Sequence record: NC_025447.1
Direction: 5' to 3' (one strand)
DNA length: 64,000 nt
Under the pieces are notes generated by a model. That model searched no databases and was not told the origin of the DNA. It saw only the letters and a list, made by a program, of their open reading frames with translations. Position numbers and translations under genes: made by a program. This document shows, piece by piece, positions 11,585 through 11,666 of this stretch; the stretch's first letter is position 1; each line of letters begins with the position of its first letter.

Positions 11585-11666
11585 CCGGGCGTATCTCAAC
11601 GGTCTTCTAAACCGTCGTTAATCGAGTAACTGGAGTATGCAGGTTCGAGTCCTGTCGCCTGGGCCA
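11585..11666 (+). tRNA. atypical D-armless tRNA-like gene, anticodon UCU
   Basis: Acceptor CCGGGCG/CGCCTGG, ACGGT-CTTCTAA-ACCGT, GCAGG-TTCGAGT-CCTGT, G73-CCA; 7-nt linker in place of the D-arm. Confidence 0.75.

Follow-up and report, generated by a model that had tools for sequence, protein, structure and literature searches.

The element at positions 11585-11666 of the window, the 64,000-nucleotide stretch of DNA analysed here, is most probably a functional elongator tRNA-Arg(UCU) that decodes AGA and is built around a non-cloverleaf core. The evidence comprises the anatomy of the gene, its conservation in phages, the covariation of its stems, the correlation between identity bases and anticodon, the complementarity of tRNA gene content among phage genomes, and codon usage. 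The element belongs to what is apparently a widespread, undescribed class of non-cloverleaf phage tRNAs; full-text literature searches gave no description of the architecture, and absence there is not proof of novelty. We give a slightly better than even chance to the broader proposal that this class, with Arg, Ile and Met/Ile2 anticodons, has a rewired core, with a D stem whose strands enclose the anticodon arm and a D loop joined directly to the T stem, is charged by host class Ia synthetases, and is used by ordinary bacterial EF-Tu and ribosomes. If true, elongator tRNAs without a cloverleaf would here be known for the first time outside organelles; their altered body may be retained as a means of evading tRNA-directed nucleases or homing endonucleases.

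The rewired gene and its detection

The window derives from Escherichia phage 121Q (KM507819.1, Asteriusvirus, 348.5 kb), and coordinates in that record equal window coordinates plus 62000. In the GenBank record, the interval is gene 124, labelled 'tRNA-Leu(taa)'. Its parts are as follows.

11585-11666, plus strand: whole rewired gene, a probable tRNA-Arg(UCU) with encoded CCA (RF00005, 32.6 bits in local mode; our own model R1, 100.6 bits)
11585-11591, plus strand: acceptor stem, 5' strand CCGGGCG, pairing with 11656-11662 (7 bp including G3.U70)
11592-11594, plus strand: connector U8 A9 U10, invariant in the 30-sequence alignment
11595-11597, plus strand: D-like stem, 5' strand C11 U12 C13 (CUC), pairing with 11624-11626
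11599-11615, plus strand: anticodon arm ACGGU-CUUCUAA-ACCGU, with a 5-bp stem, a 7-nt loop containing U33, and UCU at 11606-11608
11616-11623, plus strand: linker CGUUAAUC, a conserved 3'-side bulge between the anticodon stem and the D-like stem
11624-11626, plus strand: D-like stem, 3' strand G40 A41 G42 (GAG), covarying with 11595-11597
11627-11638, plus strand: D-loop-like connector UAACUGGAGUAU, leading directly into the T stem, with GG at 11632-11633 as proposed G18 G19 and A11634 as proposed A20
11639-11655, plus strand: T arm GCAGG-UUCGAGU-CCUGU, with a 5-bp stem, almost the same as in canonical T5 tRNA-Arg
11656-11666, plus strand: acceptor 3' strand CGCCUGG (11656-11662), G73 (11663) and CCA (11664-11666), read from the sequence

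The gene retains the 7-bp acceptor stem, the 5-bp anticodon and T stems, a TPsiC-type loop, the discriminator and CCA of a cloverleaf tRNA. The D hairpin (10-13/22-25 around the D loop) is absent between position 9 and the anticodon arm, where the 7 nt UAUCUCA (11592-11598) are all that occupies its place. After the anticodon arm come 23 nt, CGUUAAUCGAGUAACUGGAGUAU (11616-11638), which contain GUUA/UAAC and a GG. The preliminary description had placed the acceptor stem, UCU anticodon loop, T arm, G73-CCA, the 7 nt and the 23-nt region exactly where we find them. It had also called the gene D-armless, which is correct for the hairpin and incorrect for its components, since the gene has both a stem and a loop of D type, arranged in another order.

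Standard tools handle this arrangement poorly. ARAGORN did not call the 121Q gene in either bacterial or mitochondrial mode, and an Rfam run over the whole window at gathering thresholds did not list it. A local Rfam search matched RF00005 with 32.6 bits (gathering score 29, E 3.5e-5), in an alignment that treats the D arm as deleted, with 4 nt for 15 model positions. With our own covariance model R1, the 121Q gene scored 100.6 bits, among the top matches to the family model, versus at most 38 bits for canonical tRNAs.

Distribution of the family in phages

A BLASTN search with the element alone returned 685 phage records. Coverage of the element is at least 80% in 242 of them, and identity in phage groups unrelated to 121Q is typically 85-91%. 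Carriers include Asteriusvirus, Felixounavirus, Vequintavirinae, T5-like Klebsiella phages, Salmonella phage 7t3 and Streptomyces phages. When IMG/VR and metagenomes were scanned with sequence patterns, the family grew to 110 distinct sequences at 160 loci. An additional IMG/VR pattern anchored at the 5' end retrieved chiefly chance matches and four new members; this pattern did not demand the D-loop-like connector, which is present in every member recovered with it. In a scan of genome contigs, at least two members were found among the matches listed, one of them (L281) inside a phage-like cluster of 14 tRNAs. Copies of the family are labelled in GenBank as Leu, Met, TERM, OTHER, plain 'tRNA' or not at all, and the FelixO1 copy is unannotated.

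In scans that left the anticodon free, all members carried UCU except one with CCU, which also belongs to Arg. Discriminator 73 is G in 62, A in 44 and U in 4 of the 110 sequences, and is thus a purine in 106, which fits Arg. The CCA end is encoded in the copies of enterobacterial phages and absent from those of Streptomyces phages. The G3.U70 pair occurs in 8 of 110 members. A member with anticodon CCU lies on viral contig L047 (12999-13078), which carries a divergent rewired UCU copy 270 nt downstream (13348-13427); in this second copy the D-loop-like sequence is AAUUGGAUAGA and pair 11-42 is G-C, not C-G. The Sf14 genome, for which an Arg_TCT gene has been published, gave no strong match to the family model, so that gene is probably canonical.

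Covariation of the relocated D-like helix

Covariation was evaluated in alignment A3, consisting of 30 distinct family members, and in the set of 110 sequences. When the fourth helix (columns 11-13/40-42) was included, 98.7% of the cells in A3 were paired and 15 of 20 pairs showed double changes; this pairing score was approached by none of 500 shuffles and by none of the slid controls. The same alignment also shows strong covariation in the acceptor, anticodon and T stems. In the acceptor stem, changes on both sides were observed in all seven pairs, with 99.5% of cells paired, and all five pairs of the anticodon stem covary. Helix 11-13/40-42 itself is 100% paired. Its consensus is a C-N-N directly after UAU, which pairs with an N-N-G located past the anticodon arm.

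Among the 110 sequences, pair 12-41 appears as UA (64), GC (27), AU (17) and CG (2), and pair 13-40 as CG (96), GC (8), UA (5) and UG (1). For both pairs, the mutual information equals the full column entropy, on a level with the pairs of the acceptor stem. A candidate fourth layer, 14-39, alternates between A.C (59) and C.A (24). Because the CUC/GAG helix covaries in this way, we conclude that a D stem exists and is closed around the anticodon arm. The GG, UUCGA and U8 are invariant across the family sequences; with respect to the connector, the 110-sequence scan fixed A9 and U10, and only U8 (110/110) is an independent observation there. In the linker, whose columns were left free by the scan pattern, C32, A36 and A37 are invariant, with U34 in 108 and U35 in 106 of 110.

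Neither RNAalifold nor single-sequence folding recovered the 3-bp D-like helix. Nearest-neighbour energies for the 121Q sequence are -20.3 kcal/mol with this helix, -21.4 kcal/mol for the three main stems alone, and -23.0 kcal/mol with the GUUA/UAAC hairpin. The D-like helix therefore rests on comparative evidence, as energy models do not favour it.

The GUUA/UAAC pairing (33-36/43-46), which the preliminary description had taken as a long variable arm, was considered as a conserved helix and rejected. No double-sided change was observed in either the 30 or the 110 sequences, 5 of 30 sequences lack its outer pair, and 6 uncompensated changes occur among the 110. The GAG in the loop of this hairpin covaries instead with the CUC upstream of the anticodon arm (11595-11597). 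Since the GUUA/UAAC bases are nearly invariant, the comparison suggests tertiary or recognition roles for them rather than a plain helix. A pseudoknot of UUA (34-36) with UAA (43-45) beside the D-like helix may be an alternative, because these bases hardly vary.

A second subfamily and the identity bases

A search of Streptomyces phage Stanimal with R1 identified two further genes with the same topology, a shorter linker (UGAAA), and the anticodons CCU and GAU. Scanning IMG/VR for this UGAAA-linker subtype yielded 97 loci with 67 distinct sequences. The D-like helix is paired in 67/67 of them, and each of its three pairs shows all four Watson-Crick types; the TAT connector is present in 66 of the 67. 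The anticodons of this subfamily are UAU (26), UCU (13), ACG (9), GAU (8), CAU (7) and CCU (4), and UCG was found in a further variant of the same type.

The 26 Arg genes of this second subfamily all have A as the base after the GG. The 41 Ile/Met genes all have U or C at this place, and A as the discriminator. The Arg identity set of E. coli comprises A20, C35, U/G36 and A/G73, with A20 as the main determinant for ArgRS (PMC9976931). In the 121Q gene, C35 and U36 are present in the anticodon UCU (11606-11608), the discriminator is a purine (G73), and A11634 directly follows the conserved GG; its spatial match to position 20 is inferred. By analogy, we propose GGA as the equivalent of G18 G19 A20. 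The tracking of anticodon by identity bases supports this reading, and it is the pattern expected if the RNAs are charged according to their anticodons.

tRNA gene content and codon usage

Phage 121Q encodes six canonical tRNAs (Gly UCC, Ser UGA, Ser ACU, Met, Asn and Thr UGU), none of which is specific for Arg. The sister phage G17 encodes the same six and, in addition, a canonical 77-nt tRNA-Arg(UCU) at the position taken by the rewired gene in 121Q, with the same tRNA-Ser before it and the same ORF after it; no rewired copy was found anywhere in the G17 genome. One rewired copy and no canonical tRNA-Arg(UCU) was likewise observed in the whole genomes of Riker, Klebsiella phage DP, Antha and 7t3, with 25, 20, 15 and 11 canonical tRNAs, respectively, and in the first 50 kb of FelixO1, with 25. 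Arg(ACG) is present in several of these five phages. Of 63 loci that have the element, L060 alone also showed a separate canonical tRNA-Arg(UCU). In Stanimal (L488:1501-1578, L487:1821-1896), tRNA-Ile(GAU) is encoded in a canonical and in a rewired version, alongside rewired genes for Arg(UCU) and Arg(CCU); hence, rewired and canonical forms are not always mutually exclusive.

AGA is rare in E. coli. In 121Q, which has 34% G+C, it occurs at 8.5 per 1000 codons and makes up 23.5% of Arg codons. Other tRNAs of the phage likewise read A-ending codons that are frequent in it, namely GGA, UCA and ACA. The meaning of AGA was examined in a 929-aa tail protein of 121Q aligned with homologues of at most 57% identity. 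At its 16 AGA/AGG sites, 57% of aligned cells are Arg, 3% Ser and 2.5% Ala. The CGN sites of the same protein are 48% Arg, so AGA/AGG sites match Arg equally well, and two invariant Arg residues are encoded by AGA.

Two other tRNA genes in these genomes are of note. The window contains a tRNA-Ser with anticodon ACU (13464-13555), which G17 and 7t3 also have; apart from tRNA-Arg(ACG), bacterial-type tRNAs seldom carry A34, and AGU is the commonest Ser codon of 121Q (32.9%). In Klebsiella phage DP, a gene annotated as tRNA-Ser (L007:764-838) is reported by ARAGORN as 'tRNA-???' with a two-base anticodon and may be another irregular tRNA.

Proposed expression, structure and origin

Two features lie upstream of the rewired gene.

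11453-11480, plus strand: candidate sigma-70-like promoter, TGGACA, 16 nt, TG-n-TATAAT, about 10 nt upstream of tRNA-Ser (consensus match only)
11491-11580, plus strand: canonical tRNA-Ser(UGA), Rfam 61.7 bits, 4 nt upstream of the rewired gene

The promoter-like site is a strong consensus match, with 11/12 hexamer matches and the TG of an extended -10 element. As the two tRNA genes are only 4 nt apart, they are likely made as a dimeric precursor from this site; the rewired tRNA would thus be co-transcribed with tRNA-Ser(UGA) and then excised like any tRNA. From the features described above, we infer the three-dimensional fold, processing, charging with Arg and ribosomal use of the 121Q tRNA as follows. 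The D stem would form as C11-U12-C13, on the 5' side of the anticodon arm, pairs at long range with G40-A41-G42 on its 3' side. This stem would stack on the anticodon stem, giving one extended helix with a conserved 7-8-nt bulge on the 3' side (CGUUAAnn). The D-loop-like UAAnUGGAGUAU would come after the 3' strand of the stem and lead directly into the T stem; its GG would lock the T loop, and the next A would serve ArgRS as the A20 determinant. In terms of the cloverleaf, segments 10-21 and 22-48 would be swapped, with all helices, U8, GG and the T loop kept. Host ArgRS would charge the RNA through C35, U36, the A20 equivalent and R73, and the charged tRNA would then read AGA.

The UAAnUGGAGUAU segment resembles the D loops of canonical tRNA-Arg, which are AAUUGGAUA in G17 and AAGGGAG in T5. 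The family probably derives from a canonical tRNA-Arg(UCU) gene like that of T5, judging from the close similarity of the T5 acceptor stem, T arm and anticodon loop. The permutation would be the outcome of an internal duplication and a subsequent deletion.

The neighbouring tRNA-Ser(UGA) shares features with the rewired gene. The 19/21 identity between their anticodon arms, noted in the preliminary description, was confirmed, and in 121Q the anticodon stems of the two genes are the same. The tRNA-Ser(UGA) genes of 121Q and G17 (L004:610-699) differ by one D-loop base and by three compensated pairs in the anticodon stem. Because the 121Q Ser stem equals that of its rewired neighbour, and the same stem is found in rewired genes of unrelated phages, the comparison suggests a short gene-conversion patch in the 121Q tRNA-Ser gene. 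The likeness says nothing on recognition by SerRS and is best taken as such a local patch, not as a sign of Ser identity.

Alternative explanations

Other readings of the element were weighed against a functional tRNA-Arg(UCU). One is a tRNA that would recode or mistranslate AGA, carrying Ser, or Ala by way of G3.U70; it was suggested by G73, the long region after the anticodon and the G3.U70 pair of the 121Q copy. The preliminary description had favoured Ser-type identity on the first two of these features and had considered Ser insertion at AGA. We regard this explanation as very unlikely. The hairpin of the supposed variable arm shows no compensatory change and its loop pairs elsewhere, A73 occurs in 44 of the 110 members (40%), so that G73 is not conserved, the AGA/AGG sites of the tail protein align with Arg rather than Ser or Ala, and the A20-like base tracks Arg anticodons. 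G3.U70 is the main determinant for AlaRS, and Ala identity through this pair was rejected, given that the pair is not conserved in the family and is present in canonical tRNA-Arg(UCU) genes. The sites with G3.U70 are window 11587 with 11660, the canonical T5 gene (L292:77-151) and the canonical G17 gene (L004:704-780). A decaying tRNA pseudogene with a deleted D arm would account for the rejection of the 121Q gene by standard tRNA finders, and is effectively refuted by conservation and covariation. The 110 and 67 distinct sequences of the two subfamilies show compensatory changes in every helix and invariant unpaired segments, and the 121Q copy itself ranks among the top family-model scores. 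Covariation across related phages had been put forward as a check on the gene, with non-conservation as the sign of a pseudogene; all stems covary.

A non-translational tRNA mimic, such as a decoy for a tRNA-targeting defence nuclease or another tRNA-binding factor, is improbable in our assessment, though much less so than recoding. The unusual core could impede use by EF-Tu or the ribosome, and countering tRNA-targeting defences is a known function of phage tRNAs (PMC10264068, PMC11555353). A decoy, however, needs no covarying 7-bp acceptor stem, purine discriminator, host-appropriate CCA or identity bases that track the anticodon. Furthermore, the element takes the place of the missing canonical tRNA-Arg(UCU) in six phage genomes (for FelixO1, in the first 50 kb), and the anticodons of the 121Q-type family are confined to Arg codon boxes. 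About equally doubtful is a reading, drawn from sequence context, in which the gene has tRNA-Arg function and the rewiring was selected at the DNA level, as an allele immune to, and spreading with, a homing endonuclease that cuts canonical tRNA-Arg genes. In FelixO1-like, T5-like and 7t3-like phages, the rewired tRNA is followed, after 13-75 nt, by the start of an endonuclease-type gene, and the 85-90% identity across unrelated phages points to horizontal transfer. The genes concerned are the following, two of which have a Pfam HNH_3 match.

L002:1596-1943: endonuclease-type gene
L006:1292-1801: endonuclease-type gene
L005:1301-1819: endonuclease-type gene

For the FelixO1-type endonuclease ORF, Pfam gave no match, and the names HNH or endonuclease VII come solely from the annotation of other records. 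Such a neighbour was observed in only 12 of 56 contexts, with none in 121Q, and phage tRNA clusters are rich in HNH genes anyway. The rewired gene may be linked to homing-endonuclease mobility.

Comparison with known systems

The closest canonical relatives are the T5 gene tRNAR (AY543070.1 40773-40847) and the G17 gene G17_00186, which share the loop CUUCUAA, G3.U70, R73 and an encoded CCA with the 121Q gene. In T5 tRNAR, the acceptor stem and T arm are nearly identical to those of 121Q, and G17_00186 follows tRNA-Ser(UGA) in the slot where 121Q has the rewired gene; both canonical and rewired genes presumably serve to read AGA. In canonical tRNA-Arg(UCU), positions 9 and 26 bracket a normal D hairpin, and the variable loop is 5 nt long. 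In the rewired gene, by contrast, the strands of the D stem flank the anticodon arm, and the D-loop-like segment stands in the place of the variable loop.

Metazoan mitochondrial tRNA-Ser(AGY) also lacks the D hairpin, has an extended anticodon helix and keeps the acceptor stem and T arm (PMC4394434, PMC9976931). Both the absence of the D hairpin and the extended anticodon helix, with three covarying pairs and a possible fourth (14-39), are found in the phage family. In D-armless mitochondrial tRNAs, the conserved D-loop/T-loop nucleotides are lost and adapted mitochondrial factors are used. The phage RNAs, in contrast, keep GG, UUCGA and U8, would need ordinary bacterial factors, and are unrelated to the mitochondrial ones by descent. 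A non-standard order of segments is also seen in the circularly permuted tRNA genes of Cyanidioschyzon and Archaea; in these, the 3' half precedes the 5' half and the cloverleaf is restored via a circular intermediate (PMC3978253, PMC3218864). The rewired gene differs in having standard termini and an internal permutation that would persist in the mature RNA.

Allo-tRNAs, to which the preliminary description had pointed and which were described by Mukai et al. in 2017, reportedly have 8/4 and 9/3 acceptor/T geometries and a long variable arm. They are likewise non-canonical, bacterial or phage-associated, and poorly handled by gene finders, whereas the rewired gene has a 7/5 geometry, no supported variable-arm helix, an Arg anticodon and no Ser or Sec-like identity. 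The tRNA-like domain of tmRNA shares the acceptor stem and T arm, a reduced D region and, with the 121Q copy, G3.U70; it has no anticodon arm and is charged with Ala, while the rewired family has a full anticodon arm and does not conserve G3.U70 (PMC3985003).

Should the rewired RNAs prove to be charged and used, bacterial translation does not require the cloverleaf, and the same helices can be wired in another order. In that case, phage tRNA repertoires have also been under-counted or mislabelled, which distorts analyses of codon compensation and anti-defence functions. Rewired tRNAs offer a test case for how the tRNA body is read by ArgRS, IleRS, MetRS, RNase P, EF-Tu and tRNA-targeting defence nucleases, and their scaffold is a possible naturally tested template for orthogonal tRNAs.

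Transcripts and neighbouring reading frames

Three raw RNA runs contained no phage reads. A wastewater metatranscriptome gave patchy contigs, one of which covers 11591-11934, and FelixO1-type copies occur in contigs of at least 12 RNA-labelled runs; in both cases, DNA carry-over is possible.

Downstream of the rewired gene, three tandem paralogous ORFs of 54 aa, starting with MTHEEWM, occupy positions 11690-12176 of the window. One copy (11690-11854) was searched against Pfam and gave no match. A similar EEWM motif was observed in an ORF upstream of the tRNA pair (10997-11179).
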